A stretch of 64,000 nt of DNA from Rebecca billardiae RCC1528 (lineage: Eukaryota; Protista; Haptophyta), in NCBI GenBank assembly GCA_965240325.2, contig OZ251233.1, positions 1,426,001 to 1,490,000 of the forward strand, read 5' to 3'. Shown here one piece after another: positions 1-43,220 of this stretch. The stretch's first letter is position 1; the number at the start of each line of letters is the position of its first letter. The position numbers were made by a program, and so were the translations under genes. The notes beneath the pieces were generated by a model that made no database searches, was not told where the DNA came from, and worked only from the letters and a program-made list of their open reading frames with translations.

Positions 1-3000
1 GCGCGATGCGTCCACGCCAAGCTCGGCCGCCAAACGCTCCGAGGTGCGCACCGACACAGCCGCGAACGCTGCCGCCGACATGTCGAGCTGCAGAAGCGCG
101 TACGACTCGGACTCAAAGCGTGGCGGCGGCGAGGGCGAGGGCGGCGGCGGCGGCGGCGAGGGCGGCGTGTGCGAACGGACCGGCTCGACAACAGGCACGC
201 CCAGCGCGCGCGACAGCTCCGCGAGGTCGGTCGGCGAATCAGGCGTGGCTCCCGGCGTCAACGCCGTCACCGCGTCCACGACCGCATCGCCCGACGCCGA
301 GTCCGACCGTACCGTGATCACCACGTCGAGCAAGCCGCTCCCTGTCTCCAGAGTGCGCTCCACCGCGAGCTGGCTCGCGTCGACACCCAGCTGAGCCGCA
401 AGCGCTGCCAGCACGCTCTCCGTCGCGCCGTCGAACTGCACGCTCGTCACGTTCAGCGTCAACGCCACGTACTGCACACTGCCGTCCGACCCAGGCGGCG
501 GCGACGGCGGCGACGGCGGCGGCGGTGGCGCTGACGGCGCAGCGGGCGGCGAGGGCGGTGGCGACGGCAGCGATGGCGGCGACGGTGGCGGCGACGGCGG
601 CACGTGCGCGTGTGGCGACGTCAGCACAGGCACGCCCAGACTCGCCGACAGCTCCTCCAGGCTCGCAGGCGAAGCCTCCGTCGCGCCGGGCGTGAGCGCG
701 GCCACAGGATCGACCACCGCCACCTCGTCCAAAAGCGGCGATGTCGTCAGCTTGAACACGACCGACACACTGCCGTCCGTGTTCGTCCCCACCGACTCGA
801 CGACCACGCGCTCCGGAGCGATGCCCAGCTCGGCCGCGATGGCCGTGCGCACGGCGTCGCTCGCCGCCGTGAACTCGGCCTCGCTCACATCCAGCGTGAG
901 CGAGACGTACTGGTTGCTCACGATGCTGCTGCCACCGCCCGGCGGCGGCGACGGCGGAAGCGGTGGCGGCGGCGGAGCAGACGGCGGCATGTGAGCCGTC
1001 GGCGCGCCCTGCACCACCACGCCAAGCGCCGCCGAAAGCTCGGCCAGGCTCGACGGCGAAGTCGAGGTGGCGCCTGGCGTCAGAACGCTCACGACGTCCA
1101 CGCCAGACTCGCCCGCTACCGTGTCCGTCGTCACCTTGATCACCACAGAGACGCCGCCGTCCACGGCCACGCTCGTCTCGACGCTCACGCGCGAACCGTC
1201 CACGCCAAGCTGAGCCGCAACCGCGGACAGCACGCTGGCTTGGGCAGACGCAAACGCCGACTCGGTCGTGTCGAGCACCAGCGTCACGTACTGCTCGCTC
1301 GAGAAGTCCGGCGGCGGGTACGGCGGCGGTGATGGTGCGACCGGCGGAGCCGAGGGCGGCACGTGCGTGCGCGGCACCGCGCGCACAGGCACGCCCAGAG
1401 CCGTCGACAAAGCGCCCAGACTCGTAGGAGACGATGGCGTCGCGCCCGGCGTGAGCAAAGCGGCCACGTCCAAGACGGGCTCGCCAGCCGACACGTCGCT
1501 CGTCACCTTCACAACCACGCCCAGCAAACCGCCGCCGCCGTCAAGCACAGCCTCGATGCTCACGCGCGATGCGTCCACGCCAAGCTCGGCCGCCAAACGC
1601 TCCGAGGTGCGCACCGACACAGCCGCGAACGCTGCCGCCGACATGTCGAGCTGCAGAAGCGCGTACGACTCGGGCTCAAAGCGTGGCGGCGGCGAGGGCG
1701 AGGGCGGCGGCGGCGGCGGCGAGGGCGGCGTGTGCGAACGGACCGGCTCGACCACAGGCACGCCCAGCGCGCGCGACAGCTCCGCGAGGTCGGTCGGCGA
1801 GTCAGGCGTGGCTCCCGGCGTCAACGCCGTCACCGCGTCCACGACCGCATCGCCCGACGCCGAGTCCGACCGTACCGTGATCACCACGTCGAGCAAGCCG
1901 CTCCCTGTCTCCAGAGTGCGCTCCACCGCGAGCTGGCTCGCGTCGACACCCAGCTGAGCCGCAAGCGCTGCCAGCACGCTCTCCGTCGCGCCGTCGAACT
2001 GCACGCTCGTCACGTTCAGCGTCAACGCCACGTACTGCACACTGCCGTCCGACCCAGGCGGCGACGACGGCGGCGACGGCGGCGGCGGTGGCGCTGACGG
2101 CGCAGCGGGCGGCGAGGGCGGTGGCGACGGCAGCGATGGCGGCGACGGTGGCGGCGACGGCGGCACGTGCGCGTGTGGCGACGTCACCACAGGCACGCCC
2201 AGACTCGCCGACAGCTCCTCCAGGCTCGCAGGCGAAGCCTCCGTCGCGCCTGGCGTGAGCGCGGCCACAGGATCGACCACCGCCACTTCGTCCAAAAGCG
2301 GCGATGTCGTCAGCTTGAACACGACCGACACACTGCCGTCCGTGTTCGTCCCCACCGACTCGACGACCACGCGCTCCGGAGCGATGCCCAGCTCGGCCGC
2401 GATGGCCGTGCGCACGGCGTTGCTCGCCGCCGTGAACTCGGCCTCGCTCACATCCAGCGTGAGCGAGACGTACTGGTTGCTCACGATGCTGCTGCCACCG
2501 CCCGGCGGCGGCGACGGCGGAAGCGGTGGCGGCGGCGGAGCAGACGGCGGCATGTGAGCCGTCGGCGCGCCCTGCACCACCACGCCAAGCGCCGCCGAAA
2601 GCTCGGCCAGGCTCGACGGCGAAGTCGAGGTGGCGCCTGGCGTCAGAACGCTCACGACGTCCACGCCAGACTCGCCCGCTACCGTGTCCGTCGTCACCTT
2701 GATCACCACAGAGACGCCGCCGTCCACGGCCACGCTCGTCTCGACGCTCACGCGCGAACCGTCCACGCCAAGCTGAGCCGCAACCGCGGACAGCACGCTG
2801 GCTTGGGCAGACGCAAACGCCGACTCGGTCGTGTCGAGCACCAGCGTCACGTACTGCTCGCTCGAGAAGTCCGGCGGCGGGTACGGCGGCGGTGATGGTG
2901 CGACCGGCGGAGCCGAGGGCGGCACGTGCGTGCGCGGCACCGCGCGCACAGGCACGCCCAGAGCCGTCGACAAAGCGCCCAGACTCGTAGGAGACGATGG

Positions 3001-6000: not shown

Positions 6001-6419
6001 CGGCGGGTACGGCGGCGGTGATGGTGCGACCGGCGGAGCCGAGGGCGGCACGTGCGTGCGCGGCACCGCGCGCACAGGCACGCCCAGAGCCGTCGACAAA
6101 GCGCCCAGACTCGTAGGAGACGATGGCGTCGCGCCCGGCGTGAGCAAAGCGGCCACGTCCAAGACGGGCTCGCCAGCCGACACGTCGCTCGTCACCTTCA
6201 CAACCACGCCCAGCAAACCGCCGCCGCCGTCAAGCACAGCCTCGATGCTCACGCGCGATACGTCCACGCCAAGCTCGGCCGCCAAACGCTCCGAGGTGCG
6301 CACCGACACAGCCGCGAACGCTGCCGCCGACATGTCGAGCTGCAGAAGCGCGTACGACTCGGACTCAAAGCGTGGCGGCGGCGAGGGCGAGGGCGGCGGC
6401 GGCGGCGGCGAGGGCGGCG
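1..6419 (-). repeat. Four-plus tandem 1563-bp (521-aa) units with modules E-F-C-D
   Basis: Equivalent ORFs at 604, 2167, 3730, 5293 and 6856 (period 1563). Module starts: E SYALLQLDMSAAAF, F EQYVTLVLDTTESAF. C and D are shared with the 1692-bp unit. Confidence 0.95.
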
Positions 6420-9400
6420 TGTGCGAACGGACCGGCTCGACAACAGGCACGCCCAGCGCGCGCGACAGCTCCGCGAGGTCGGTCGGCGAGTCAGGCGTGG
6501 CACCCGGCGTCAACGCCGTCACCGCGTCCACGACCGCATCGCCCGACGCCGAGTCCGACCGTACCGTGATCACCACGTCGAGCAAGCCGCTCCCTGTCTC
6601 CAGAGTGCGCTCCACCGCGAGCTGGCTCGCGTCGACACCCAGCTGAGCCGCAAGCGCTGCCAGCACGCTCTCCGTCGCGCCGTCGAACTGCGCGCTCGTC
6701 ACGTTCAGCGTCAACGCCACGTACTGCACACTGCCGTCCGACCCAGGCGGCGGCGACGGCGGCGACGGCGGCGGCGGTGGCGCTGACGGCGCAGCGGGCG
6801 GCGAGGGCGGTGGCGACGGCAGCGATGGCGGCGACGGTGGCGGCGACGGCGGCACGTGCGCGTGTGGCGACGTCAGCACAGACACGCCCAGACTCGCCGA
6901 CAGCTCCTCCAGGCTCGCAGGCGAAGCCTCCGTCGCGCCGGGCGTCAGCACGCCCACCGGGTCCACCACGGGCACCTCGCCCAGAAGCGGCGATGTCGTC
7001 AGCTTGAACGCAACCGACACACTGCCGTCCGTGTTCGTCCCCACCGACTCGACGACCACGCGCTCCGGAGCGATGCCCAGCTCGGCCGCGATGGCCGTGC
7101 GCACGGCGTCGCTCGCCGCCGTGAACTCGGCCTCGCTCACATCCAGCGTGAGCGAGACGTACTGGTTGCTCACGATGCTGCTGCCACCGCCCGGCGGCGG
7201 CGACGGCGGAAGCGGTGGCGACGGCGGCGACGGCGGAGGCATCGGCAGGGGCGATGGTGGATCAGGTGGCGACGGCGGGCTCGACGGTGCCGGCGGCGGC
7301 GAAGGCGGCACGTGTGCGCGGGCTGCCCCCGCCAACGGCACGCCCAGCTGCGCGGACAGCTCCTCAAGGCTCGACGTCGACCCGTCTGTGCCGCCAGGCG
7401 TGAGCACGGACACAGGCTCCACCACGGTCTCGCCCTCTGCCGTCGTCAGCGTGAATACCACCTCGAGGACGCCGTCCTCGCCCTCGGTCGTCCCACTCAC
7501 GCTCAGGCGGTCCGCGTGCACGCCAAGCTCGGCCGCGAGCGCATCGAGCAAGGCTGCACTCGCCGCGTCGAAGTCGTCCGCGCTCATCTCCACGCTCAGC
7601 ACGAATGGCGACTCGAGATCAGCCGGAGGCAGCGGCGGCGACGGCGGCGGCGACGGCGGCGTGCGGCTTGACGGGTCGTCCACCACAGGCACGCCCAAAA
7701 TCGTCGACAGCTCCGCAAGGCTCGAAGGCGACGTCGGAGATACGCCGGGCGTGAGCGCCGACACGGCCTGCACGGGCTCCTCGCCCGCATCCGCGTCCGT
7801 CGTGACGCGGATGGACACGGCGATGGTGCCGTCCGCGTTCGTCGTCACACCAGCGAGACTCAGCCGCGACGCGTCCACGCCCAGCTGAGCAGCCAGAGCA
7901 CTCAGCATGTCGCCGCTCTCCGGCACGAACTCCGCCGCAGACATGTCCAGCGTCAGCGCGAACACCGAGCTGCCCGTCGCGGGCGGAGGCGACGGCGGCG
8001 CGGGCGGTGGATCGGGCGGCGACGGCGGAGGCGATGGCGGCGGGCGACGAGGCGGCGACGGCGGCGGGCTGCGCATCGGCGAAGGCGGCGGCGGCGGCGG
8101 CGAGGGCGGCGTGTGCGAACGGACCGGCTCGACAACAGGCACGCCCAGCGCGCGCGACAGCTCCGCGAGGTCGGTCGGCGAGTCAGGCGTGGCACCCGGC
8201 GTCAACGCCGTCACCGCGTCCACAACAACATCTCCCGACGCCGAGTCCGACCGTACCGTGATCACCACGTCGAGCAAGCCGCTCCCTGTCTCCAGAGTGC
8301 GCTCCACCGCGAGCTGGCTCGCGTCGACACCCAGCTGAGCCGCAAGCGCTGCCAGCACGCTCTCCGTCGCGCCGTCGAACTGCGCGCTCGTCACGTTCAG
8401 CGTCAACGCCACGTACTGCACACTGCCGTCCGACCCAGGCGGCGGCGACGGCGGTGACGGCGGCGGCGGTGGCGGTGACGGCGCAGCGGGCGGCGAGGGC
8501 GGTGGCGACGGCAGCGATGGCGGCGACGGTGGCGGCGACGGCGGCACGTGCGCGTGTGGCGACGTGACCACAGACACGCCCAGACTCGCCGACAGCTCCT
8601 CCAGGCTCGCAGGCGAAGCCTCCGTCGCGCCGGGCGTCAGCACGCCCACCGGGTCCACCACGGGCACCTCGCCCAGAAGCGGCGATGTCGTCAGCTTGAA
8701 CGCAACCGACACACTGCCGTCCGTGTTCGTCCCCACCGACTCGACGACCACGCGCTCCGGAGCGATGCCCAGCTCGGCCGCGATGGCCGTGCGCACGGCG
8801 TCGCTCGCCGCCGTGAACTCGGCCTCGCTCACATCCAGCGTGAGCGAGACGTACTGGTTGCTCACGATGCTGCTGCCACCGCCCGGCGGCGGCGACGGCG
8901 GAAGCGGTGGCGACGGCGGCGACGGCGGAGGCATCGGCAGGGGCGATGGTGGATCAGGTGGCGACGGCGGGCTCGACGGTGCCGGCGGCGGCGAAGGCGG
9001 CACGTGTGCGCGGGCTGCCCCCGCCAACGGCACGCCCAGCTGCGCGGACAGCTCCTCAAGGCTCGACGTCGACCCGTCTGTGCCGCCAGGCGTGAGCACG
9101 GACACAGGCTCCACCACGGTCTCGCCCTCTGCCGTCGTCAGCGTGAATACCACCTCGAGGACGCCGTCCTCGCCCTCGGTCGTCCCACTCACGCTCAGGC
9201 GGTCCGCGTGCACGCCAAGCTCGGCCGCGAGCGCATCGAGCAAGGCTGCACTCGCCGCGTCGAAGTCGTCCGCGCTCATCTCCACGCTCAGCACGAATGG
9301 CGACTCGAGATCAGCCGGAGGCAGCGGCGGCGACGGCGGCGGCGACGGCGGCGTGCGGCTCGACGGGTCCTCCACCACAGGCACGCCCAAAATCGTCGAC

Positions 9401-15400: not shown

Positions 15401-18400
15401 GGCGTCAGCACGCCCACCGGGTCCACCACGGGCACCTCGCCCAGAAGCGGCGATGTCGTCAGCTTGAACGCAACCGACACACTGCCGTCCGTGTTCGTCC
15501 CCACCGACTCGACGACCACGCGCTCCGGAGCGATGCCCAGCTCGGCCGCGATGGCCGTGCGCACGGCGTCGCTCGCCGCCGTGAACTCGGCCTCGCTCAC
15601 ATCCAGCGTGAGCGAGACGTACTGGTTGCTCACGATGCTGCTGCCACCGCCCGGCGGCGGCGACGGCGGAAGCGGTGGCGACAGCGGCGACGGCGGAGGC
15701 ATCGGCAGGGGCGATGGTGGATCAGGTGGCGACGGCGGGCTCGACGGTGCCGGCGGCGGCGAAGGCGGCACGTGTGCGCGGGCTGCCCCCGCCAACGGCA
15801 CGCCCAGCTGCGCGGACAGCTCCTCAAGGCTCGACGTCGACCCGTCTGTGCCGCCAGGCGTGAGCACGGACACAGGCTCCACCACGGCCTCGCCCTCTGC
15901 CGTCGTCAGCGTGAATACCACCTCGAGGACGCCGTCCTCGCCCTCGGTCGTCCCACTCACGCTCAGGCGGTCCGCGTGCACGCCAAGCTCGGCCGCGAGC
16001 GCATCGAGCAAGGCTGCACTCGCCGCGTCGAAGTCGTCCGCGCTCATCTCCACGCTCAGCACGAATGGCGACTCGAGATCAGCCGGAGGCAGCGGCGGCG
16101 ACGGCGGCGGCGACGGCGGCGTGCGGCTCGACGGGTCCTCCACCACAGGCACGCCCAAAATCGTCGACAGCTCCGCAAGGCTCGAAGGCGACGTCGGAGA
16201 TACGCCGGGCGTGAGCGCCGACACGGCCTGCACGGGCTCCTCGCCCGCATCCGCGTCCGTCGTGACGCGGATGGACACGGCGATGGTGCCGTCCGCGTTC
16301 GTCGTCACACCAGCGAGACTCAGCCGCGACGCGTCCACGCCCAGCTGAGCAGCCAGAGCACTCAGCATGTCGCCGCTCTCCGGCACGAACTCCGCCGCAG
16401 ACATGTCCAGCGTCAGCGCGAACACCGAGCTGCCCGTCGCGGGCGGAGGCGACGGCGGCGCGGGCGGTGGATCGGGCGGCGACGGCGGAGGCGATGGCGG
16501 CGGGCGACGAGGCGGCGGCGGTGGCATGCTGGGCAGTGGTGGCGGTAGAGGCGGCGACGAGCTGGGTGGCTGCGGTGGCGGCGCCGGCGGAAGCGGGGGG
16601 GGCAACGGCTCGGTGCGTGGCGGAGGCGGCTGGTGGGGCGGCGCGCTTGGAGGCGGTCGCGGTGGCGACGTGGGCGGTGGCCGCGGGGGCTGGCTCGGCG
16701 GCGGCGGTGGCGGCGGAGACGGCGGCGGAGACGGTGGCGCAGGCGGCGGCAGGGGCTCCGTGCGTGGCGGAGGCGGCGGTGAGGGCGGTGGGCTCGGCAG
16801 TGGGCGCGGCGGTGGGCTTGGCGGTGGCACGGGTGGCGCGGCAGGCGGCACTGGTGGTGGTGAGTCCGGGGTCGCAGGAGGCGGCGACCAAGGCGGGGGC
16901 ATCGGAGGCGGTGAGGGCGGAGGGGCCGGCGGTGGGGCCGGCGGCAGACGCGGCGGCGGTGGGCGGGGAGGCAGGCCGGGTGGCGGGCTCGGTGGCGGCG
17001 AAGGTGGGGGCCTTGGCGGTGGAGGAGAGGGTGGTGGGGTTGGCGGTTGGATTGGCGGCGGTGACGGCGGCGGAGACGGCGGCGGGCTTGGCGGTGGGTT
17101 CGGCGGCGGGCTAGGGGGCGGGCTTGGCGGTGGAGGTGACGGCGGAGGGCTCGGTGGCGGGCTCGGCGGTGGGCTCGGTGGCGGGCTCGGCGGTGGTGAT
17201 GGCGGCGAAATGGGCGGCGGGCTCGGCGGAGGGCTTGGCGGTGGGCTGGGCGGCGGGACTGGCGGTGGCTTGGGCGGTGGGCTCGGTGGTGGCTTGGGCG
17301 GTGGGCTCGGTGGCGGCGATGGCGGCGGGCTCGGCGGCGGGCTCGGCGGCGGTGATGGTGGTGGACTCGGCGGTGGTGATGGCGGCGGGCTGGGTGGCGG
17401 TGATGGTGGCGGGCTCGGCGGCGGCGAGGGCGGGGGGCTCGGCGGCGGGCTTGGAGGTGGGCTGGGCGGCGGCGAGGGCGGTGGGCTAGGCGGCGGTGAG
17501 GGTGGTGGGCTTGGTGGTGGGCTTGGCGGTGGCGAAGGAGGCGGACTCGGCGGCGGAGATGGCGGGGGGCTCGGCGGTGGGCTTGGTGGCGGCGACGGTG
17601 GTGGGCTGGGCGGCGGGCTCGGCGGTGGCGACGGCGGTGGGCTCGGTGGCGGGCTCGGCGGCGGGCTGGGTGGCGGGCTCGGCGGTGGTGACGGCGGTGG
17701 CGATGGCGGCGGACTAGGTGGCGGTGACGGCGGCGGACTGGGTGGCGGGCTGGGCGGTGGTGATGGCGGTGGGCTCGGCGGCGGTGATGGCGGCGGGCTC
17801 GGCGGCGGCGACGGCGGTGGGCTCGGCGGTGGTGAAGGCGGCGGGCTCGGTGGTGGCGACGGCGGTGGGGACGGCGGCGGGCTCGGTGGTGGGCTAGGCG
17901 GCGGGCTCGGCGGCGGTGAGGGCGGCGGGCTCGGCGGTGGGCTGGGCGGCGGGCTTGGAGGCGGTGACGGTGGCGGGCTCGGAGGCGGGCTCGGCGGCGG
18001 GCTAGGCGGTGGCGACGGTGGTGGCGAGGGCGGTGGGCTGGGCGGTGGGCTGGGCGGTGGGCTCGGCGGCGGTGAAGGTGGCGGTGAGGGCGGCGGTGAG
18101 GGCGGTGGGCTCGGAGGTGGACTGGGCGGCGGGCTCGGCGGTGGCGAGGGCGGTGGCGACGGCGGCGGCACCGGCGGCGGGCTGGGCGGCGGACTTGGCG
18201 GCGGGCTCGGCGGCGGTGAAGGCGGCGGTGAGGGCGGCGGTGAGGGCGGCGGTGAGGGCGGTGGGCTCGGAGGTGGGCTGGGCGGCGGGCTCGGGGGTGG
18301 CGACGGTGGTGGCGAGGGCGGTGGGCTCGGAGGCGGGCTCGGCGGCGGGCTCGGCGGCGGCGAGGGCGGCGGTGAGGGCGGCGGCGAGGGCGGCGGTGAA

Positions 18401-21400
18401 GGCGGTGGGCTGGGAGGTGGGCTCGGCGGTGGGCTCGGCGGTGGGCTCGGCGGTGGCGACGGTGGTGGCGAGGGCGGTGGGCTCGGAGGCGGGCTGGGTG
18501 GTGGGCTCGGCGGCGGTGAAGGTGGCGGTGAGGGCGGCGGTGAGGGCGGTGGGCTCGGCGGCGGGCTCGGCGGCGGGCTTGGCGGCGGGCTCGGCGGCGG
18601 TGAGGGCGGCGGTGAAGGCGGTGGGCTGGGAGGTGGGCTCGGCGGTGGGCTCGGCGGTGGGCTCGGGGGTGGCGACGGTGGTGGTGACGGCGGTGGCGAG
18701 GGCGGTGGGCTCGGCGGTGGGCTCGGCGGCGGTGAGGGCGGCGGTGAGGGCGGCGGTGAGGGCGGTGGGCTCGGAGGTGGGCTGGGCGGCGGGCTCGGGG
18801 GTGGCGACGGTGGTGGCGAGGGCGGTGGGCTCGGAGGCGGGCTCGGCGGCGGGCTCGGCGGCGGCGAGGGCGGCGGGCTCGGCGGCGGTGAGGGCGGCGG
18901 TGAAGGCGGTGGGCTGGGAGGTGGGCTCGGCGGTGGGCTCGGCGGTGGGCTCGGCGGTGGCGACGGTGGTGGTGACGGCGGTGGGCTCGGCGGTGGGCTC
19001 GGCGGCGGTGAGGGCGGCGGTGAGGGCGGCGGTGAAGGCGGTGGGCTGGGAGGTGGGCTTGGCGGTGGGCTTGGCGGTGGGCTCGGCGGTGGCGACGGTG
19101 GTGGCGAGGGCGGTGGGCTGGGCGGCGGGCTGGGTGGTGGGCTCGGCGGCGGGGAAGGTGGTGGTGAGGGCGGCGGTGAGGGCGGTGGGCTCGGCGGCGG
19201 GCTCGGCGGCGGGCTTGGCGGCGGTGAGGGCGGCGGTGAAGGCGGTGGGCTGGGAGGTGGGCTCGGCGGTGGGCTCGGCGGTGGGCTCGGTGGTGGCGAC
19301 GGTGGTGGCGACGGCGGTGGGCTCGGAGGCGGGCTCGGCGGCGGGCTCGGCGGCGGCGAGGGCGGCGGCGAGGGCGGCGGTGAGGGCGGCGGGCTCGGAG
19401 GCGGGCTCGGAGGCGGGCTCGGCGGTGGCGAGGGCGGTGGCGAGGGCGGTGGGCTCGGCGGTGGGGTGGGAGGCGGACTGGGCGGCGGTGAAGGCGGCGG
19501 TGAGGGCGGCGGTGAGGGCGGTGGGCTGGGTGGCGGGCTGGGTGGCGGCCTTGGCGGCGGCGACGGCGGCGGCGACGGGGGCGGGCTTGGCGGCGGGCTC
19601 GGTGGTGGCGATGGTGGTGGGCTCGGTGGAGGGCTCGGCGGTGGGCTCGGTGGTGGTGATGGTGGCGGGCTTGGTGGCGGGCTGGGCGGCGGGCTGGGCG
19701 GCGGGCTGGGTGGTGGGGATGGCGGCGGCGGCGATGGAGGAGGACTCGGCGGTGGGCTTGGCGGTGGGCTGGGGGGCGGACTCGGTGGTGGTGATGGTGG
19801 CGGAGATGGCGGTGGGCTGGGCGGCGGTCTGGGCGGCGGGCTCGGTGGCGGGCTGGGTGGTGGTGATGGCGGTGGGCTCGGTGGTGGCGACGGTGGCGGG
19901 CTCGGTGGTGGGCTCGGTGGTGGCGGGCTCGGCGGTGGGCTCGGCGGTGGGCTCGGCGGTGGCGACGGGGGCGGGCTCGGCGGCGGGCTGGGTGGTGGCG
20001 ATGGTGGCGGGCTTGGTGGTGGGCTTGGCGGTGGGCTCGGTGGTGGCGATGGTGGTGGGCTTGGCGGTGGGCTGGGTGGCGGGGACGGCGGCGGGCTCGG
20101 CGGTGGCGAGGGCGGCGGTGGCGACGGGGGGGGGCTGGGCGGTGGGCTCGGCGGTGGCGATGGTGGCGGGCTCGGTGGCGGGCTCGGCGGGGGGCTGGGC
20201 GGCGGGCTGGGTGGCGGAGACGGCGGTGGGCTCGGCGGAGGGCTGGGCGGTGGTGATGGCGGCGGGCTCGGTGGTGGCGATGGTGGCGGGCTCGGTGGTG
20301 GGCTCGGAGGTGGCGGGCTCGGTGGCGGGCTTGGCGGTGGAGAGGGTGGTGGCGACGGCGGCGGGCTTGGCGGAGGGCTCGGTGGTGGGGACGGCGGTGG
20401 ACTCGGCGGTGGGCTGGGTGGCGGGCTCGGCGGTGGGCTCGGCGGTGGCGACGGCGGCGGGCTGGGTGGTGGGCTCGGTGGCGGGGACGGCGGCGGGCTC
20501 GGCGGTGGCGAGGGCGGTGGTGGCGATGGAGGTGGGCTGGGCGGCGGGCTCGGCGGTGGCGATGGTGGTGGGCTCGGTGGCGGGCTGGGCGGAGGGCTGG
20601 GCGGAGGGCTCGGCGGTGGGCTCGGCGGCGGTGACGGTGGCGGAGACGGTGGTGGACTCGGCGGCGGGCTCGGCGGCGGAGGTGACGGTGGTGGGCTCGG
20701 TGGAGGGCTCGGTGGTGGCGACGGTGGTGGTGATGGCGGCGGGCTCGGTGGTGGCGACGGTGGTGGGCTCGGTGGTGGGCTCGGTGGTGGCGGGCTCGGC
20801 GGTGGGCTCGGCGGTGGGCTCGGCGGTGGCGACGGGGGCGGGCTCGGCGGCGGGCTTGGTGGTGGTGATGGTGGTGGGCTCGGTGGCGGGCTCGGCGGTG
20901 GGCTCGGCGGTGGCGATGGTGGCGGGCTTGGTGGTGGGCTGGGTGGCGGGGACGGCGGCGGGCTCGGCGGTGGCGAGGGTGGCGGTGGCGACGGAGGTGG
21001 GCTGGGCGGTGGGCTCGGCGGTGGCGATGGTGGCGGGCTCGGTGGCGGGCTCGGCGGAGGGCTCGGCGGCGGGCTGGGCGGCGGGCTCGGTGGCGGAGAC
21101 GGCGGTGGAGACGGTGGCGGGCTGGGCGGCGGGCTCGGTGGTGGCGATGGTGGCGGGCTCGGTGGTGGGCTCGGAGGCGGCGGGCTCGGTGGAGGGCTTG
21201 GCGGTGGGGAGGGCGGTGGCGACGGCGGCGGGCTTGGCGGCGGGCTCGGCGGCGGTGAGGGCGGCGGTGAAGGCGGTGGGCTGGGTGGCGGGCTCGGCGG
21301 TGGGGTCGGCGGTGGCGACGGCGGTGGGCTTGGTGGTGGGCTCGGTGGCGGGGACGGCGGCGGGCTCGGCGGTGGCGAGGGCGGCGGTGGCGATGGAGGT

Positions 21401-24099
21401 GGGCTGGGCGGCGGGCTCGGCGGTGGCGATGGTGGTGGGCTCGGTGGCGGGCTGGGCGGAGGACTCGGAGGAGGGCTCGGCGGTGGGCTCGGCGGCGGTG
21501 ACGGTGGCGGAGACGGTGGTGGACTCGGCGGCGGGCTCGGCGGCGGAGGCGACGGTGGTGGGCTCGGTGGAGGGCTCGGTGGTGGCGACGGTGGTGGCGA
21601 TGGCGGCGGGCTCGGTGGTGGCGACGGTGGTGGGCTCGGTGGTGGGCTCGGTGGTGGCGGGCTCGGCGGTGGGCTCGGCGGTGGGCTCGGCGGCGGCGAT
21701 GGTGGCGGGCTCGGCGGTGGGCTCGGTGGCGGGGAGGGCGGTGGGCTCGGAGGCGGGCTGGGTGGCGGGCTGGGTGGCGGGCTCGGTGGCGGCGATGGTG
21801 GCGGGCTAGGCGGTGGTGGCGACGGTGGCGGGCTCGGCGGCGGGCTCGGCGGCGGGCTGGGAGGTGGGCTGGGAGGCGGGCTCGGGGGCGGCGACGGCGG
21901 TGGGCTCGGTGGCGGGCGTGGTGGCGGGCTGGGCGGTGGGCTTGGTGGCGGGCTCGGTGGAGGTGGCGACGGTGGCGGGCTCGGCGGCGGGCTCGGCGGC
22001 GGCGACGGAGGTGGGCTCGGAGGCGGGCTGGGCGGCGGAGCGGGCGGTGGGCTCGGCGGCGGGCTCGGCGGCGGTGGTGAGGGTGGAGGACTAGGCGGCG
22101 GCGATGGCGGCGGGCTAGGCGGCGGGCTGGGCGGCGGCGGCGAGGGTGGCGGGCTCGGCGGCGGTGAAGGCGGTGGACTGGGCGGCGGCGAGGGCGGTGG
22201 GCTGGGCGGTGGCGGGCTCGGCGGTGGCTTCGGCGGTGGAGGCGATGGCGGGGGGCTCGGCGGGGGGCTGGGAGGCGGCGACGGCGGCGGGCTCGGCGGT
22301 GGAGACGGTGGCGGGCTTGGTGGCGGGCTGGGCGGCGGCGATGGCGGCGGGCTCGGCGGTGGAGGGGACGGCGGCGGACTCGGCGGTGGGCTGGGTGGCG
22401 GCGACGGCGGCGGGCTGGGCGGCGGAGGTGACGGTGGCGGGCTCGGCGGCGGGCTGGGCGGCGGGCTAGGTGGCGGGCTGGGCGGTGGTGACGGCGGTGG
22501 GCTGGGCGGCGGGCTGGGCGGCGGGGACGGCGGCGGGCTGGGCGGCGGGCTGGGCGGCGGGCTGGGCGGTGGAGCGGGCGGTGATGGGCTCGGCGGCGGG
22601 CTCGGCGGCGGGCTCGGGGGTGGTGGGGACGGCGGCGGGCTCGGTGGCGGCGAGGGTGGAGGCGAAGGCGGCGGGCTCGGAGGCGGGCTCGGAGGCGGCG
22701 ACGGTGGCGGGCTCGGAGGCGGGCTCGGCGGCGGGCTCGGCGGCGGTGACGGTGGCGGGCTCGGAGGCGGGCTCGGAGGCGGGCTCGGAGGCGGTGACGG
22801 TGGCGGACTTGGAGGTGGGCTTGGAGGCGGAGGCGACGGGGGCGGACTGGGAGGCGGCGAGGGTGGCGGGCTCGGCGGCGGCGAAGGCGGCGGGCTCGGC
22901 GGTGGCGAGGGCGGCGGGCTCGGAGGCGGAGGCGACGGGGGCGGGCTCGGAGGCGGCGAGGGAGGCGGGCTCGGCGGTGGCGAGGGCGGCGGGCTAGGCG
23001 GCGGCGATGGTGGCGGGCTCGGCGGCGGCGAAGGCGGTGGGCTGGGCGGCGGGCTGGGCGGCGGACCGGGCGGTGGTGACGGCGGCGGGCTGGGCGGTGG
23101 CGACGGCGGCGGGCTGGGTGGCGGGCTGGGCGGCGGCGACGGCGGCGGGCTGGGCGGCGGGCTGGGCGGCGGGCTGGGCGGTGGGGCGGGAGGTGATGGA
23201 GTCGGCGGCGGGCTCGGCGGCGGGCGCGGGGGCGGTGGGGACGGCGGCGGGCTTGGAGGCGGCGAGGGTGGAGGCGAAGGTGGCGGGCTCGGAGGCGGGC
23301 TCGGAGGCGGTGACGGTGGCGGGTTCGGAGGCGGGCTCGGAGGCGGGCTCGGAGGCGGCGAGGGAGGTGATGGGGTCGGCGGCGGGCTCGGCGGCGGGCT
23401 CGGGGGTGGTGGGGACGGCGGCGGGCTCGGAGGCGGCGAGGGTGGAGGCGAAGGTGGCGGGCTCGGAGGCGGGCTCGGAGGCGGCGAGGGAGGCGGGCTG
23501 GGCGGGGGCGAGGGCGGCGGGCTCGGCGGCGGGCTCGGCGGCGGGCTCGGTGGCGGGAACGGCGGCGGGCTCGGCGGTGGGAAGGGCTTGGCGAAATCCC
23601 ACGGGCAGCTCGAGATGGGCGTGGTGGGGTAGTATTCCGTCCCATCCGTGATGGTGTTGATCGTGAGTATTCTGTCCTTGGTGCCATCCACGATCGTACA
23701 CATGGTGAAGCCACCGCCTTGGGCGGTGTCATCGAAGGTGCCTAAAGATAATACCTCGTCCGTCGCGCCGCCGCCACACCCGGACTCGTACGCGACTGCG
23801 ACCGAGTCGTCGCCGTCCATTGCATCCACGACGATGTTTGACAATCCATCCGTGTCGCGCAGATTCTGCACGTAGGCGTCTGTGGGCAGGTCCTTGTCGA
23901 TGAGGTAGGTGCATTCGCCAGCGTTCAACCGCTGATTTCGCAGCGAGTTGGCGGTCCCATACGAGCCTGCGCCAGACGTGGGCACCGTATACACCTGTAT
24001 GGTGTCGAGCTGAATGCACCCGCCGTTGGAGCACACGCGCATGTACGAGTTGACGCCGTTCGGGTCAAAGTAGACGACCGAAAGGAAAAGCGTACCCAT
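1..24099 (-). CDS. Giant (>8,033 aa, 3' end beyond window) proline-rich surface/extracellular glycoprotein: LTD-like head + (SPPP)n stalk + >=40 tandem SEA-like modules
   Basis: ATG at 24099-24097 (MGTLFLSVVYFDPNGVNSYMRVCSNGG...), with an in-frame stop ~35 nt upstream. The ORF track lists no minus ORF in this frame, which fits an ORF with no stop before position 1. Both repeat periods (1692 and 1563 bp) are multiples of 3. The translation is protein-like (globular modules with Pro-rich linkers), whereas the other frames give Arg/Gly/Ala shadows. Confidence 0.92.
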   Translation of the reverse strand, partial: MGTLFLSVVYFDPNGVNSYMRVCSNGGCIQLDTIQVYTVPTSGAGSYGTANSLRNQRLNAGECTYLIDKDLPTDAYVQNLRDTDGLSNIVVDAMDGDDSVAVAYESGCGGGATDEVLSLGTFDDTAQGGGFTMCTIVDGTKDRILTINTITDGTEYYPTTPISSCPWDFAKPFPPPSPPPFPPPSPPPSPPPSPPPSPPPSPPPSPPPSPPPSPPPSPPPSPPPSPPPSPPPPSPPPSPPPTPSPPSPPPSPPPSPPPNPPPSPPPSPPPSPPPSPPPSPPPSPPPSPPPPRPPPSPPPTPSPPAPPPSPPPSPPPSPPPSPPPSPPPSPPPSPPPSPPPSPPPGPPPSPPPSPPPSPPPSPPPSPPPSPPPSPPPSPPPSPPPSPPPSPPPPSPPPSPPPSPPPSPPPSPPPSPPPSPPPSPPPPSPPPSPPPSPPPSPPPSPPPSPPPSPPPSPPPSPPPSPPPSPPPSPPPSPPPSPPPSPPPSPPPSPPPPSPPPSPPPSPSPPAPPPSPPPSPPPSPPPSPPPSPPPSPPPSPPPSPPPSPPPSPPPSPPPSPPPPSPPPSPPPSPPPSPPPSPPPPSPPPSPPPSPPPSPPPSPPPSPPPSPPPSPPPSPPPSPPPPKPPPSPPPPSPPPSPPPSPPPSPPPSPPPSPPPPSPPPSPPPSPPPSPPPSPPPPSPPPSPPPAPPPSPPPSPPPSPPPSPPPSPPPSPPPPSPPPSPPPSPPPRPPPSPPPSPPPSPPPSPPPSPPPSPPPSPPPSPPPPSPPPSPPPSPPPSPPPSPPPSPPPSPPPSPPPSPPPSPPPSPPPSPPPSPPPPSPPPSPPPSPPPSPPPSPPPSPPPSPPPSPPPSPPPPSPPPSPPPSPPPSPPPSPPPSPPPSPPPSPPPSPPPSPPPSPPPSPPPSPPPPSPPPSPPPSPPPSPPPSPPPSPPPTPPPSPPPSPPPSPPPSPPPSPPPSPPPSPPPSPPPSPPPSPPPPSPPPSPPPSPPPSPPPSPPPSPPPSPPPSPPPSPPPSPPPSPPPSPPPSPPPSPPPSPPPSPPPPSPPPSPPPSPPPSPPPSPPPSPPPSPPPSPPPSPPPSPPPSPPPSPPPSPPPSPPPSPPPSPPPPSPPPSPPPSPPPSPPPSPPPSPPPSPPPSPPPSPPPPSPPPSPPPSPPPSPPPSPPPSPPPSPPPSPPPSPPPSPPPSPPPSPPPSPPPPSPPPSPPPSPPPSPPPSPPPSPPPSPPPSPPPSPPPSPPPSPPPSPPPSPPPSPPPSPPPSPPPSPPPPSPPPSPPPSPPPSPPPSPPPSPPPSPPPSPPPSPPPSPPPSPPPSPPPSPPPSPPPSPPPSPPPPSPPPSPPPSPPPSPPPSPPPSPPPSPPPSPPPSPPPSPPPSPPPSPPPSPPPSPPPSPPPSPPPPSPPPSPPPSPPPSPPPSPPPSPPPSPPPRPPPSPPPSPPPSPPPSPPPSPPPSPPPSPPPSPPPPSPPPSPPPSPPPSPPPSPPPSPPPSPPPSPPPSPPPSPPPSPPPSPPPSPPPSPPPRPPPSPPPSPPPSPPPSPPPSPPPSPPPTPPPSPPPSPPPSPPPSPPPSPPPSPPPSPPPSPPPSPPPSPPPSPPPSPPPSPPPSPPPSPPPSPPPSPPPSPPPSPPPSPPPSPPPSPPPSPPPSPPPSPPPSPPPSPPPSPPPSPPPSPPPSPPPSPPPSPPPSPPPSPPPSPPPSPPPSPPPSPPPSPPPSPPPSPPPSPPPSPPPSPPPSPPPSPPPSPPPSPPPSPPPSPPPSPPPSPPPSPPPSPPPSPPPSPPPSPPPSPPPSPPPSPPPSPPPSPPPSPPPSPPPSPPPSPPPSPPPSPPPSPPPSPPPSPPPSPPPSPPPSPPPSPPPSPPPSPPPSPPPSPPPSPPPSPPPSPPPSPPPSPPPSPPPSPPPSPPPSPPPSPPPSPPPSPPPSPPPSPPPSPPPSPPPSPPPSPPPSPPPSPPPSPPPSPPPSPPPSPPPSPPPSPPPSPPPVPPPSPPPSPPPSPPPSPPPSPPPSPPPSPPPSPPPSPPPSPPPSPPPSPPPSPPPSPPPSPPPSPPPSPPPSPPPSPPPSPPPSPPPSPPPSPPPSPPPSPPPSPPPSPPPSPPPSPPPSPPPSPPPSPPPSPPPSPPPSPPPSPPPSPPPSPPPSPPPSPPPSPPPSPPPSPPPSPPPSPPPSPPPSPPPSPPPSPPPSPPPSPPPSPPPSPPPSPPPSPPPSPPPSPPPSPPPSPPPSPPPSPPPSPPPSPPPSPPPSPPPSPPPSPPPSPPPSPPPSPPPSPPPSPPPKPPPSPPPKPPPVPPPSPPPSPPPSPPPISPPSPPPSPPPSPPPSPPPSPPPSPPPPSPPPSPPPNPPPSPPPSPPPSPPPIQPPTPPPSPPPPRPPPSPPPSPPPGLPPRPPPPRLPPAPPPAPPPSPPPMPPPWSPPPATPDSPPPVPPAAPPVPPPSPPPRPLPSPPPSPPPPPRTEPLPPPAPPSPPPSPPPPPPPSQPPRPPPTSPPRPPPSAPPHQPPPPRTEPLPPPLPPAPPPQPPSSSPPLPPPLPSMPPPPPRRPPPSPPPSPPDPPPAPPSPPPATGSSVFALTLDMSAAEFVPESGDMLSALAAQLGVDASRLSLAGVTTNADGTIAVSIRVTTDADAGEEPVQAVSALTPGVSPTSPSSLAELSTILGVPVVEDPSSRTPPSPPPSPPLPPADLESPFVLSVEMSADDFDAASAALLDALAAELGVHADRLSVSGTTEGEDGVLEVVFTLTTAEGEAVVEPVSVLTPGGTDGSTSSLEELSAQLGVPLAGAARAHVPPSPPPAPSSPPSPPDPPSPLPMPPPSPLSPPLPPSPPPGGGSSIVSNQYVSLTLDVSEAEFTAASDAVRTAIAAELGIAPERVVVESVGTNTDGSVSVAFKLTTSPLLGEVPVVDPVGVLTPGATEASPASLEELSASLGVSVLTSPHAHVPPSPPPSPPSLPSPPPSPPAAPSAPPPPPSPPSPPPGSGGSVQYVALTLNVTSAQFDGATESVLAALAAQLGVDASQLAVERTVETGSGLLDVVITVRTDSTSGDVVVDAVTALTPGATPDSPTDLAELSRALGVPVVEPVRSHTPPSPPPPPPSPMRSPPPSPPRCPPPSPPPSPPDPPPAPPSPPPATGSSVFALTLDMSAAEFVPESGDMLSALAAQLGVDASRLSLAGVTTNADGTIAVSIRVTTDADAGEEPVQAVSALTPGVSPTSPSSLAELSTILGVPVVEDPSSRTPPSPPPSPPLPPADLESPFVLSVEMSADDFDAASAALLDALAAELGVHADRLSVSGTTEGEDGVLEVVFTLTTAAGETVVEPVSVLTPGGTDGSTSSLEELSAQLGVPLAGAARAHVPPSPPPAPSSPPSPPDPPLPLPMPPPSPPSPPLPPSPPPGGGSSIVSNQYVSLTLDVSEAEFTAASDAVRTAIAAELGIAPERVVVESVGTNTDGSVSVEFKLTTSPLLGEVPVVDPVGVLTPGATEASPASLEELSASLGVSVVTSPHAHVPPSPPPSPPSLPSPPPSPPAPPSAPPPPPSPPSSPPGSDGSVQYVALTLNVTSAQFDGATESVLAALAAQLGVDASQLAVERTVETGSGLLDVVITVRTDSTSGDVVVDAVTALTPGATPDSPTDLAELSRALGVPVVEPVRSHTPPSPPPPPPSPMRSPPPSPPRRPPPSPPPSPPDPPPAPPSPPPATGSSVFALTLDMSAAEFVPESGDMLSALAAQLGVDASRLSLAGVTTNADGTIAVSIRVTTDADAGEEPVQAVSALTPGVSPTSPSSLAELSTILGVPVVEDPSSRTPPSPPPSPPLPPADLESPFVLSVEMSADDFDAASAALLDALAAELGVHADRLSVSGTTEGEDGVLEVVFTLTTAEGETVVEPVSVLTPGGTDGSTSSLEELSAQLGVPLAGAARAHVPPSPPPAPSSPPSPPDPPLPLPMPPPSPPSPPLPPSPPPGGGSSIVSNQYVSLTLDVSEAEFTAASDAVRTAIAAELGIAPERVVVESVGTNTDGSVSVAFKLTTSPLLGEVPAVDPVGVLTPGATEASPASLEELSASLGVSVLTSPHAHVPPSPPPSPPSLPSPPRSPPAAPSAPPPPPSPPSPPPGSDGSVQYVALTLNVTSAQFDGATESVLAALAAQLGVDASQLAVERTVETGSGLLDVVITVRTVSASGDVVVDAVTALTPGATPDSPTDLAELSRALGVPVVEPVRSHTPPSPPPPPPSPMRSPPPSPPRRPPPSPPPSPPDPPPAPPSPPPATGSSVFALTLDMSAAEFVPESGDMLSALAAQLGVDASRLSLAGVTTNADGTIAVSIRVTTDADAGEEPVQAVSALTPGVSPTSPSSLAELSTILGVPVVEDPSSRTPPSPPPSPPLPPADLESPFVLSVEMSADDFDAASAALLDALAAELGVHADRLSVSGTTEGEDGVLEVVFTLTTAEGETVVEPVSVLTPGGTDGSTSSLEELSAQLGVPLAGAARAHVPPSPPPAPSSPPSPPDPPLPLPMPPPSPPSPPLPPSPPPGGGSSIVSNQYVSLTLDVSEAEFTAASDAVRTAIAAELGIAPERVVVESVGTNTDGSVSVEFKLTTSPLLGEVPVVDPVGVLTPGATEASPASLEELSASLGVSVVTSPHAHVPPSPPPSPPSLPSPPPSPPAPPSAPPPPPSPPSSPPGSDGSVQYVALTLNVTSAQFDGATESVLAALAAQLGVDASQLAVERTVETGSGLLDVVITVRTDSTSGDVVVDAVTALTPGATPDSPTDLAELSRALGVPVVEPVRSHTPPSPPPPPPSPMRSPPPSPPRRPPPSPPPSPPDPPPAPPSPPPATGSSVFALTLDMSAAEFVPESGDMLSALAAQLGVDASRLSLAGVTTNADGTIAVSIRVTTDADAGEEPVQAVSALTPGVSPTSPSSLAELSTILGVPVVEDPSSRTPPSPPPSPPLPPADLESPFVLSVEMSADDFDAASAALLDALAAELGVHADRLSVSGTTEGEDGVLEVVFTLTTAEGETVVEPVSVLTPGGTDGSTSSLEELSAQLGVPLAGAARAHVPPSPPPAPSSPPSPPDPPSPLPMPPPSPPSPPLPPSPPPGGGSSIVSNQYVSLTLDVSEAEFTAASDAVRTAIAAELGIAPERVVVESVGTNTDGSVSVAFKLTTSPLLGEVPVVDPVGVLTPGATEASPASLEELSASLGVSVVTSPHAHVPPSPPPSPPSLPSPPPSPPAAPSPPPPPPSPPSPPPGSDGSVQYVALTLNVTSAQFDGATESVLAALAAQLGVDASQLAVERTLETGSGLLDVVITVRSDSASGDVVVDAVTALTPGATPDSPTDLAELSRALGVPVVEPVRSHTPPSPPPPPPSPMRSPPPSPPRRPPPSPPPSPPDPPPAPPSPPPATGSSVFALTLDMSAAEFVPESGDMLSALAAQLGVDASRLSLAGVTTNADGTIAVSIRVTTDADAGEEPVQAVSALTPGVSPTSPSSLAELSTILGVPVVDDPSSRTPPSPPPSPPLPPADLESPFVLSVEMSADDFDAASAALLDALAAELGVHADRLSVSGTTEGEDGVLEVVFTLTTAEGETVVEPVSVLTPGGTDGSTSSLEELSAQLGVPLAGAARAHVPPSPPPAPSSPPSPPDPPSPLPMPPPSPPSPPLPPSPPPGGGSSIVSNQYVSLTLDVSEAEFTAASDAVRTAIAAELGIAPERVVVESVGTNTDGSVSVAFKLTTSPLLGEVPVVDPVGVLTPGATEASPASLEELSASLGVSVLTSPHAHVPPSPPPSPPSLPSPPPSPPAAPSAPPPPPSPPSPPPGSDGSVQYVALTLNVTSAQFDGATESVLAALAAQLGVDASQLAVERTLETGSGLLDVVITVRSDSASGDAVVDAVTALTPGATPDSPTDLAELSRALGVPVVEPVRSHTPPSPPPPPPSPSPPPRFESESYALLQLDMSAAAFAAVSVRTSERLAAELGVDVSRVSIEAVLDGGGGLLGVVVKVTSDVSAGEPVLDVAALLTPGATPSSPTSLGALSTALGVPVRAVPRTHVPPSAPPVAPSPPPYPPPDFSSEQYVTLVLDTTESAFASAQASVLSAVAAQLGVDGSRVSVETSVAVDGGVSVVIKVTTDTVAGESGVDVVSVLTPGATSTSPSSLAELSAALGVVVQGAPTAHMPPSAPPPPPLPPSPPPGGGSSIVSNQYVSLTLDVSEAEFTAASDAVRTAIAAELGIAPERVVVESVGTNTDGSVSVAFKLTTSPLLGEVPVVDPVGVLTPGATEASPASLEELSASLGVSVLTSPHAHVPPSPPPSPPSLPSPPPSPPAAPSAPPPPPSPPSPPPGSDGSVQYVALTLNVTSAQFDGATESVLAALAAQLGVDASQLAVERTLETGSGLLDVVITVRSDSASGDAGVDAVTALTPGATPDSPTDLAELSRALGVPVVEPVRSHTPPSPPPPPPSPSPPPRFESESYALLQLDMSAAAFAAVSVRTSERLAAELGVDASRVSIEAVLDGGGGLLGVVVKVTSDVSAGEPVLDVAALLTPGATPSSPTSLGALSTALGVPVRAVPRTHVPPSAPPVAPSPPPYPPPDFSSEQYVTLVLDTTESAFASAQASVLSAVAAQLGVDGSRVSVETSVAVDGGVSVVIKVTTDTVAGESGVDVVSVLTPGATSTSPSSLAELSAALGVVVQGAPTAHMPPSAPPPPPLPPSPPPGGDSSIVSNQYVSLTLDVSEAEFTAASDAVRTAIAAELGIAPERVVVESVGTNTDGSVSVAFKLTTSPLLGEVPVVDPVGVLTPGATEASPASLEELSASLGVSVLTSPHAHVPPSPPPSPPSLPSPPPSPPAAPSAPPPPPSPPSPPPGSDGSVQYVALTLNVTSAQFDGATESVLAALAAQLGVDASQLAVERTLETGSGLLDVVITVRSDSASGDAGVDAVTALTPGATPDSPTDLAELSRALGVPVVEPVRSHTPPSPPPPPPSPSPPPRFESESYALLQLDMSAAAFAAVSVRTSERLAAELGVDASRVSIEAVLDGGGGLLGVVVKVTSDVSAGEPVLDVAALLTPGATPSSPTSLGALSTALGVPVRAVPRTHVPPSAPPVAPSPPPYPPPDFSSEQYVTLVLDTTESAFASAQASVLSAVAAQLGVDGSRVSVETSVAVDGGVSVVIKVTTDTVAGESGVDVVSVLTPGATSTSPSSLAELSAALGVVVQGAPTAHMPPSAPPPPPLPPSPPPGGGSSIVSNQYVSLTLDVSEAEFTAASNAVRTAIAAELGIAPERVVVESVGTNTDGSVSVVFKLTTSPLLDEVAVVDPVAALTPGATEASPASLEELSASLGVPVVTSPHAHVPPSPPPSPPSLPSPPPSPPAAPSAPPPPPSPPSSPPGSDGSVQYVALTLNVTSVQFDGATESVLAALAAQLGVDASQLAVERTLETGSGLLDVVITVRSDSASGDAVVDAVTALTPGATPDSPTDLAELSRALGVPVVEPVRSHTPPSPPPPPPSPSPPPRFEPESYALLQLDMSAAAFAAVSVRTSERLAAELGVDASRVSIEAVLDGGGGLLGVVVKVTSDVSAGEPVLDVAALLTPGATPSSPTSLGALSTALGVPVRAVPRTHVPPSAPPVAPSPPPYPPPDFSSEQYVTLVLDTTESAFASAQASVLSAVAAQLGVDGSRVSVETSVAVDGGVSVVIKVTTDTVAGESGVDVVSVLTPGATSTSPSSLAELSAALGVVVQGAPTAHMPPSAPPPPPLPPSPPPGGGSSIVSNQYVSLTLDVSEAEFTAASDAVRTAIAAELGIAPERVVVESVGTNTDGSVSVVFKLTTSPLLDEVAVVDPVAALTPGATEASPASLEELSASLGVPVLTSPHAHVPPSPPPSPPSLPSPPPSPPAAPSAPPPPPSPPSPPPGSDGSVQYVALTLNVTSVQFDGATESVLAALAAQLGVDASQLAVERTLETGSGLLDVVITVRSDSASGDAVVDAVTALTPGATPDSPTDLAELSRALGVPVVEPVRSHTPPSPPPPPPSPSPPPRFESESYALLQLDMSAAAFAAVSVRTSERLAAELGVDASR
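6420..16440 (-). repeat. Six tandem 1692-bp (564-aa) units, each with four ~95-aa modules A-B-C-D
   Basis: Equivalent ORF-track entries recur at 6856, 8548, 10240, 11932, 13624 and 15316 (period 1692). Module starts: A SSVFALTLDMSAAEF, B PFVLSVEMSADDF, C NQYVSLTLDVSEAEF, D QYVALTLNVTSAQF. Confidence 0.95.
16450..23585 (-). repeat. (Ser-Pro-Pro-Pro)n coding tandem repeat, extensin/pherophorin-like HRGP stalk (~2,370 aa; nearly pure SPPP from ~16950 to 23585)
   Basis: The plus strand reads (GGGL/GGGD/GGGE)n, the offset antisense of CCN CCN CCN AGC/TCN = PPPS. Synonymous third positions vary while the Pro/Ser pattern is kept. Confidence 0.95.
23585..24099 (-). other. N-terminal ~170-aa globular domain, lamin-tail-domain (LTD)-like
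   Basis: The pattern LFLSVVYFD...YMRVC...IQLDTIQVY...LNAGECTYLI...MDGDDSVAVAY resembles the LTD of extracellular proteins (LFISEY...IEIYN...L.PGE.YVI...FNGDDAV.L). Recognised by eye. Confidence 0.45.
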
Positions 24100-24865
24100 G
24101 GCGAGCCTCGCGCGACCTCGCTCGCGCGCTCGTCACGCGGCGCAGAAGCGCGGCAGGCTGCTGCCCGGCACTGCCTGCTCAGCAGGGGGTGCTCACGAGC
24201 AGCTTTCCAGAGCTTTCAGCCGTTGGTGGCCCTCCAGCGCGGAAGCGGGTGGGAACTGCCCAGGCCGCTCAATATTTTGCAGTTGGTTCAGGAAGGCAGG
24301 ATTCGTCAGTTTTCTATCATAGGCGGGACACTAATCCATAATCAAAACAGATCATATGGGGGTATCAAAAAGCTAAAATGTTTCCTCATGTGGGTAATAC
24401 GGGTTTTCATCGCGTACTAATTAGGAATCCGGCGTGGACGTCGCCGTTGATAATCTCCGCCCCGGTGGCGCCTGCGCTCAGTGGGCAGACACCCGCATCA
24501 ACCTGGCGAATTCGGCGCGGCGCGATAGCGGCTGTGTTACCGACAGGTCGCCGCTCGGCAGTGGCACTCGCCCGCCCGCCGCCGTGCACGGCGGCCGGGC
24601 CGCTCGCGCCGTGCGCTCCTGTGGCCGTCGACTCCGGGCTACGGAGGCGGCGCGGGGCGCGAGCCGTCGCAGGGCCATATGACGCCCCTCTCTGCGTCGC
24701 GCGCCTTCCTCGGCCTCGCATCATCCGCGCCTGGAAGCAGCACGCGCGTGCGCGCCACCGCAGAAAAGAAGCAGCGCAGGCCTGCGCTTCCGTGTGACGG
24801 CCGGGCGCGCGGCCGCGCGCGCCGCCATCATTATTTTTATAATACTGTATCGTCAAGCAATCGTC
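24100..24865. promoter_or_regulatory. Probable bidirectional promoter region between the giant HRGP gene and the glycosyltransferase gene
   Basis: 766-bp gap between two divergent ATGs, with a markedly AT-richer stretch at ~24270-24430 in otherwise GC-rich DNA. Confidence 0.45.
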
Positions 24866-41717: not shown

Positions 41718-41959
41718 GGTGTGCGGTGGCCGTGGACTCGTGGAGAGAATCTATCTTGTGTGTCCGTTGGCGCCTTGAGGCGGACGCGAACGCACCGGTT
41801 CGGAGGCCCGCGCTTATTATCAGAGAGCCTGATGTAGTAACGTGTGGGTAGGGTATCATAATAGTGCAGAGTTTCATAGTCATATGATAGTCGTACGGTA
41901 GATAGTCGTAGTTGAATAACCGTCATATTCATCCGAGGACGCGGAGCCCGCCACGCAGC

Positions 41960-42829: not shown

Positions 42830-43220
42830 GCGGCGACGCGCTCGACGCGGCGGTGGCGCGCTGGAGCGATGGCCGAGCAGGCGCGGCGTGCGCGCGCCCC
42901 GGCGTTGGCGTCACCCGCGGAGCCAGCGGCCGGTCGGTGCTTTTTCCCGCTGGAGGCCCGAGTGACGACCGAGGCCTGAACGTGCGCTCGGGCGCCCGGC
43001 CCCCCCGGACCCGGCCAACACACGGCCGGACCCAGACAGCTTTCGCCTTTCAGACTTGCAAGCTCGGTCCAGACGCGCGGTGACGACGACGAACGCTGCC
43101 ACTGGGGTGAACCGTACTGGCCCGGAATGTTTCGTCTGGCCGTAATCGGGGCCAGCGACGGCGACAAGCCGATGCACCAGGGGAACTCGCTGTGAGACCC
43201 AGTCCACGCCTGGAGGCAGC

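Follow-up and report, generated by a model that had tools for sequence, protein, structure and literature searches.

Which kind of protein, if any, is encoded by a reading frame that remains open for 24 kb is the question raised by the minus strand of a 64,000-nt stretch of DNA (the window) from the haptophyte Rebecca billardiae RCC1528 (contig OZ251233.1, positions 1,426,001 to 1,490,000). Six-frame translation shows that the frame is open from position 24132, just past an in-frame TGA, to position 1, and that its first ATG, at 24099, is followed by 8,033 codons with 0 stops until the frame exits the window at its left edge (1–24099, minus strand). A single continuous minus-strand ORF of ~24 kb and >8,000 aa, as described in the initial annotation, is therefore borne out. 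The five other frames contain 18–203 stops each over the module region. The sequence has a GC content of 70–80%, which, like the predominance of Haptophyta among the Atlas clusters, points to a pavlovophyte haptophyte. The giant ORF contains no N, the sole gap of the window being located at 30692–30791. The window part of the protein has a mass of 785 kDa and a pI of 4.05, and is laid out as a 173-aa head, a 2,380-aa Ser/Pro stalk, 40 complete modules, and a truncated 41st module; each D module carries one N-glycosylation sequon, ten in total. With a probability of roughly 0.6, the ORF represents ~70%, from the N-terminus on, of a giant protein at the cell surface of a pavlovophyte alga, composed of a rod, a spacer of SEA modules, and a polycystin-1-like anchor.

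Because a stop-free repeat could yield a long frame by accident, selection was tested on the codons of the stalk, which comprises aa 174–2553 (23580–16441, minus strand). The regular Ser-Pro-Pro-Pro part (aa 174–2330; 17110–23580) consists of ~75% Pro and 24% Ser, and is followed by a degenerate Pro-rich end of ~220 aa (aa ~2331–2553; 16441–17109); the stalk is devoid of Tyr, and 1,772 Pro and 542 Ser residues are found in aa 171–2560. In 469 four-residue stalk units picked by Ser spacing alone, 1,407 of the 1,407 Pro codons tested begin with CC and show no change at positions 1 and 2, while the third positions of stalk Pro codons vary at 1.3–1.6 bits. The Ser codons of these units are of the AGY type in 303 cases and of the TCN type in 166, and these two codon sets are not connected by any single synonymous change. 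The 12-nt unit of the stalk occurs in 93 DNA variants, and the longest exact repeat within the stalk is 152 nt. Such synonymous divergence is the pattern of a conserved peptide under protein-level selection and not of a DNA satellite, and the giant ORF is confirmed as an intact frame under selection with the layout given above. An open antisense frame at 16349–23629 was taken to be a shadow of the stalk repeat rather than a gene.

Long Ser-Pro(n) repeats, as in extensins and algal hydroxyproline-rich glycoproteins (HRGPs), are represented in the stalk by 527 non-overlapping SPPP motifs; an SPPP stalk had been described in the initial annotation, with a slightly higher count (~550). We infer that the stalk is hydroxylated and glycosylated. 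Polyproline-II helices rise ~0.31 nm/residue and form free filaments, and a helix of 429 residues with a predicted length of 133 nm was measured at 146 nm (PMC11015965). At 0.31 nm/residue, the predicted polyproline-II rod would be 738 nm long, so the earlier estimate of ~0.7 micrometre holds arithmetically, with a rise that has been measured for such helices (PMC11015965, PMC11725842).

The stalk is followed by two arrays of modules on the same strand. An (ABCD)x6 array (6418–16440), with a 1,692-nt unit, comprises 24 SEA/ferredoxin-like modules separated by Pro/Ser linkers of 12–43 aa, and an (EFCD)x4 array (166–6372), with a 1,563-nt unit, comprises another 16, after which a 41st module of type E (1–120) is cut by the window edge. 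The 40 complete modules thus belong to six types (A and B, six copies each; C and D, ten each; E and F, four each), whose identity to type A is 43–50% and in which 21 columns are invariant throughout. The number of complete modules, their SPPP-type linkers, and their shared motifs agree with the initial annotation, but the modules are 105–113 aa long and not ~95 aa.

The AlphaFold model of the module, based on the six-type alignment, is confident (pLDDT 90) and displays a ferredoxin-like strand–helix–strand–strand–helix–helix arrangement; a ferredoxin-like α/β fold of ~100–120 aa is the hallmark of SEA and SEA-like (MAD) domains. In a wide structure search, the best matches were Nup54 (Z 10.5, rmsd 3.0, 94 aligned residues) and CELSR1 (Z 10.0), followed by MAD28 of CDH23 (Z 9.3), MAD12 of PCDH15 (Z 9.1), and IA-2 (Z 8.0), and these matches of Z 8–10.5 span 86–96 residues. 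Lower scores were obtained for the dystroglycan complex (7.7), Notch HD (6.9), and the MUC16 SEA domain (6.5). We take this set of matches to be divergent SEA domains; those ranking just below Nup54 are juxtamembrane SEA/MAD domains of surface receptors, in keeping with a protein of the cell surface. Foldseek returned the same names, all with E > 0.001, and Atlas adds KIAA0319, ALE2_N, and two clusters from haptophytes at TM 0.68–0.72. A module that is SEA-like and not disordered, as anticipated, is supported by both the confident model and the fold searches that lead to SEA/MAD domains. No module type matches the Pfam SEA family (PF01390) at E ≤ 10, the Atlas SEA cluster reaches just 0.80, and no family exceeds the cut-off in Pfam and NCBIfam scans of the modules. 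According to the model, the modules are SEA-like in fold, yet they lie outside Pfam SEA. The ferredoxin-like fold is common and the top match, Nup54, is intracellular, and the likeness in fold shows no function. Weak RecA, HTH, and lectin rows for the modules were dismissed as chance, given the ferredoxin-like model.

An invariant glycine in the modelled hairpin marks the position at which MUC1-type SEA domains cleave themselves, at a Gly-Ser bond between strands 2 and 3. This glycine is followed by a potential nucleophile in type C (G-S-V-S-V, ten copies) and type A (G-T-I-A-V, six copies), and is not followed by one in types B, D, E, and F; the modelled loop is ~5 residues long. SEA self-cleavage is driven by loop strain (PMC10327162). 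In a tentative proposal set out below, type C and A modules would possibly be pre-cleaved and serve as shedding points.

Taken as a MUC16-like and mastigoneme-like surface filament, which we infer to be the best reading, the protein may stretch or be shed under force. The hydroxylated and O-glycosylated Ser/Pro stalk would form a stiff polyproline-II rod of ~0.7 micrometre with a β-sandwich tip on it, and the at least 40 acidic modules and their linkers would form a beads-on-a-string spacer of ~0.5 micrometre, as do the tandem SEA repeats in MUC16. The calculated lengths of the rod (~740 nm), the linkers (~340 nm), and the modules (~160 nm, with 4 nm assumed for each) give a filament of ~1.2 micrometre, with a calculated extra reserve of ~1.4 micrometre if the modules unfold. 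Beyond the window, the chain would carry on into a putative channel-less polycystin-1-like base, for ~11,350 aa altogether, and the window ORF and this putative downstream base probably form one gene. The window part of the ORF itself contains no REJ module, GAIN/GPS site, or transmembrane helices, and no transmembrane-like segment is found in it (the best 19-aa hydropathy is 1.49). Binding to a surface, a glycan, or a partner would fall to the tip; the SEA-like modules would unfold singly under load so that the array buffers or releases it, and the polycystin-1-like base would anchor the filament and might signal a pull on it to the cytosol. The giant protein would then act as a hair or glycocalyx tether made of a single molecule, with an in-built shock absorber. 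A further-reaching proposal, in which a single chain of ~11,000 residues acts as a force sensor with a glycoproline rod, >40 SEA modules unfolding in a titin-like series (~1.4 micrometre of hidden length), and a channel-less polycystin-1 base, is tentative; if true, it would represent an algal convergence on the mechanics of MUC16 and adhesion receptors, with modules shuffled by linker crossovers.

Pavlovophyte algae bear fine hairs or a surface coat, and the giant protein, if expressed, is a candidate molecule for either. It would also exemplify, outside animals, dozens of SEA modules in a MUC16-like array, and would provide a natural polyprotein with which to ask whether SEA arrays act as shock absorbers. 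If joined to a polycystin-1-like base, it would be a membrane receptor, beyond a structural filament. No description of such a protein was found in the literature on Pavlovophyceae or haptophytes and polycystin.

The closest precedent is the Chlamydomonas protein MST3, which has 8,572 aa and forms the mastigoneme shaft, with its polyproline part seated on a PKD-like anchor (PMC11015965). Both proteins are single chains of >8,000 aa with a polyproline helix of hundreds of nanometres, and a polycystin-type membrane anchor would be common to both, provided that the downstream base belongs to the giant gene. Features that set MST3 apart are a signal peptide, C-type lectin domains, a PKD2-like channel domain, and 42 proline repeats in a pattern that serves as template for MST1; the giant protein instead has a plain Ser-Pro3 rod, 40 or more SEA-like modules, and a putative channel-less polycystin-1-like base. 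The proline motif of MST3 (PMC11015965) is absent from the stalk, and the PKD2-like channel domain is absent from the window part of the protein. The likeness to MST3 is offered as a precedent by analogy, and homology is not claimed.

In MUC16, a Ser/Thr-rich mucin region precedes tandem SEA modules that match PF01390. The giant protein resembles it in having a long N-terminal region, presumably O-glycosylated, that leads into dozens of SEA modules arranged in tandem, with Pro/Ser-rich spacers between them and signs of recent duplication. The two differ in the N-terminal region, which is a hydroxyproline-type rod in the giant protein, and in the modules, which share ~10% identity with those of MUC16 and do not match PF01390, so the architecture is likely shared by convergence. 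By analogy, the giant protein would combine the workings of MUC16 and MST3, and it belongs to neither family; among giant hydroxyproline-rich or mucin-type surface filaments, its distinctive feature is the long SEA array.

Plant extensins and algal HRGPs share the Ser-Pro(n) repeats, but the stalk lacks Tyr cross-linking motifs, and its rod greatly exceeds theirs in length and is fused to arrays of folded domains. TLP-4 is a glycofibril of tetrapeptide repeats (S-P-x-x in one reading) with a rise of 12.4 Å per repeat and a thick glycan coat (PMC11725842). Its tetrapeptide repeats are of a Ser-Pro(n) type like those of the stalk, a likeness alone that implies no link between TLP-4 and the giant protein; pure Ser-Pro3 rods of this length are nevertheless candidates for TLP-4-type tetrapeptide glycofibrils. 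The tip-link cadherins PCDH15 and CDH23 have the same module fold (Z 9.0–9.3), and in simulations force makes MAD12 of PCDH15 unroll and unfold (PMC11212938). These cadherins have one MAD per chain and use cadherin repeats as the spacer, whereas in the giant protein the SEA-like module itself is repeated.

Searches for relatives bear on how the chain ends. No match was obtained with the module alignment, with the E-F-C-D region among proteins of 1,100–3,500 aa, or in two metagenome scans, and no close homologue of the head or the modules was found in the public protein and metagenome collections searched; genes of this kind are easily missed. Nor did these searches yield any protein or contig in which the modules are linked to a polycystin-1-like base. 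The ABCD unit retrieved three weak matches, and clear modules are present in one alone, a metagenomic protein of 688 aa (P0001; L007:337-2403) in which Ser/Pro linkers flank two SEA-like modules and both the N-terminus and a C-terminal segment are hydrophobic. It is a distant relative with a small-scale version of the giant protein's design, and in this respect it speaks for the surface-filament reading. Plasmid and phage tblastn matches were noise, and a viral fold library gave no match at E ≤ 0.001. The combination in P0001 of modules and Pro linkers with just a simple hydrophobic tail favours an alternative in which the giant protein is a structural glycoprotein, secreted or with a simple anchor (mucilage, a scale tether, or a hair subunit), that ends soon past the window, is separate from any polycystin-1-like gene, and acts passively, as a mucin-like spacer that takes no part in signalling. 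We consider this alternative unlikely, and the anchored surface filament remains the preferred reading.

The head (23581–24099, minus strand) contains 6 Cys and is predicted to be all-β. The initial annotation had proposed a tip resembling a lamin tail domain (LTD), and in Atlas the head falls near LTD clusters at 0.85–0.87, and 10/10 of its best named matches belong to the LTD family or clan, all under the lead threshold of 0.9 (best score 0.87). In contrast, Pfam and NCBIfam scans of the head gave nothing above cut-off, including the lamin tail domain PF00932, and the single-sequence model has a pLDDT of 37, a quality at which a fold search is uninformative. By eye, the strand pattern resembles that of bacterial LTDs of secreted nucleases. 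The LTD identity of the head is retained as a lead only. A bacterial PKD-repeat protein, the lone weak match of the head among 1.84 billion representatives, was rejected as spurious.

The chief unexplained point about the giant protein is the missing signal peptide. Hydropathy reveals no classical signal peptide at the N-terminus, as had been noted before, and the best early hydrophobic stretch, of 9 aa, looks like the first strand of the head. A short upstream exon, which had been suggested as a remedy, is not favoured: between the in-frame stop and the ATG there is no YAG acceptor and only GAG acceptors are present, and no convincing hydrophobic exon occurs in the 1 kb upstream of the ATG. 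The nearest candidate for a distant signal-peptide exon, and a weak one, is a 36-aa ORF at 24724–24831 (minus strand) with a basic and then a briefly hydrophobic stretch. An AT-rich stretch at 24300–24400 (36–38% GC), 200–300 nt upstream of the ATG, is a candidate promoter by composition, and with no ATG between 24320 and 24099, the ATG of the ORF comes first after this stretch. Within the window, no transposon or repeat upstream was found that might have severed a signal-peptide exon. Logan contigs from two different runs both start exactly at 24840, beside an AT-rich, TATA-like stretch, and a search of the window revealed no further copy of this region.

The missing signal peptide and the lack of a canonical acceptor are what a non-exported or silent copy would display, that is, a recently inactivated member or an intracellular scaffold whose signal-peptide exon was lost or never present. 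The head is also missing from a library that draws on 15 billion proteins, in which neighbouring genes from this organism's DNA runs are present. However, 24 kb without a stop or frameshift and 0 replacements at 1,407 Pro codons speak against such a copy, as does the position of the ATG as the first after the AT-rich stretch, and short-read assemblies that break at the stalk may account for the absence of the head from the library. We regard a silent or non-exported copy as improbable and retain the surface filament.

The module array is young, as judged from its sequence. Copies of one module type are 94–100% identical in DNA (0–19 nt different), and all ten higher-order units are distinct (1–26 nt), with 1–23 differences among ABCD units and 6–26 among EFCD units. 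The longest exact repeat in the array is 1,874 nt, and similarity is graded along it. ABCD units 2 and 4 (11364–14748 and 7980–11364, minus strand) show 1 nt difference over 1,563 nt and adjacent units show 15–19, a near-identity that suggests duplication of two units together (3,384 nt). The final two C modules (601–2502, minus strand) differ at 13–19 nt from the other eight, so the array diverges towards its C-terminal end. The B–C and F–C junctions have ~35 nt before C in common, the D–A and D–E junctions ~26 nt after D, and the switch from ABCD to EFCD falls within Ser/Pro linkers, consistent with unequal crossover in the linkers as the process by which modules are shuffled. That the gene is real and its array inflated or misordered by assembly, as the 94–100% identity between copies might suggest, is very improbable, since every repeat unit is distinct, similarity is graded along the array, the longest exact repeats are 1,874 nt (array) and 152 nt (stalk), and independent Logan DNA contigs, none of which spans the ORF, match neighbouring stretches at 99.9–100%.

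The nearest neighbour is a 750-aa ORF (25145–27397, plus strand) that lies head-to-head with the giant gene at a distance of ~1 kb, and on which two DNA contigs agree. It has weak Pfam matches to O-FucT (E 0.006) and Glyco_transf_8/GT8 (E 0.003), both below the cut-off, and its product could glycosylate the giant protein, a proposal for which adjacency is the sole basis. Further along, the 100-N scaffold gap at 30692–30791 falls inside a charged, coiled-coil-like gene. The stretches 41040–44246 and 48543–50483 contain a PQ-loop transporter, a TBP-like factor with an N-terminal extension, a triose-phosphate-family transporter, and a histidine kinase.
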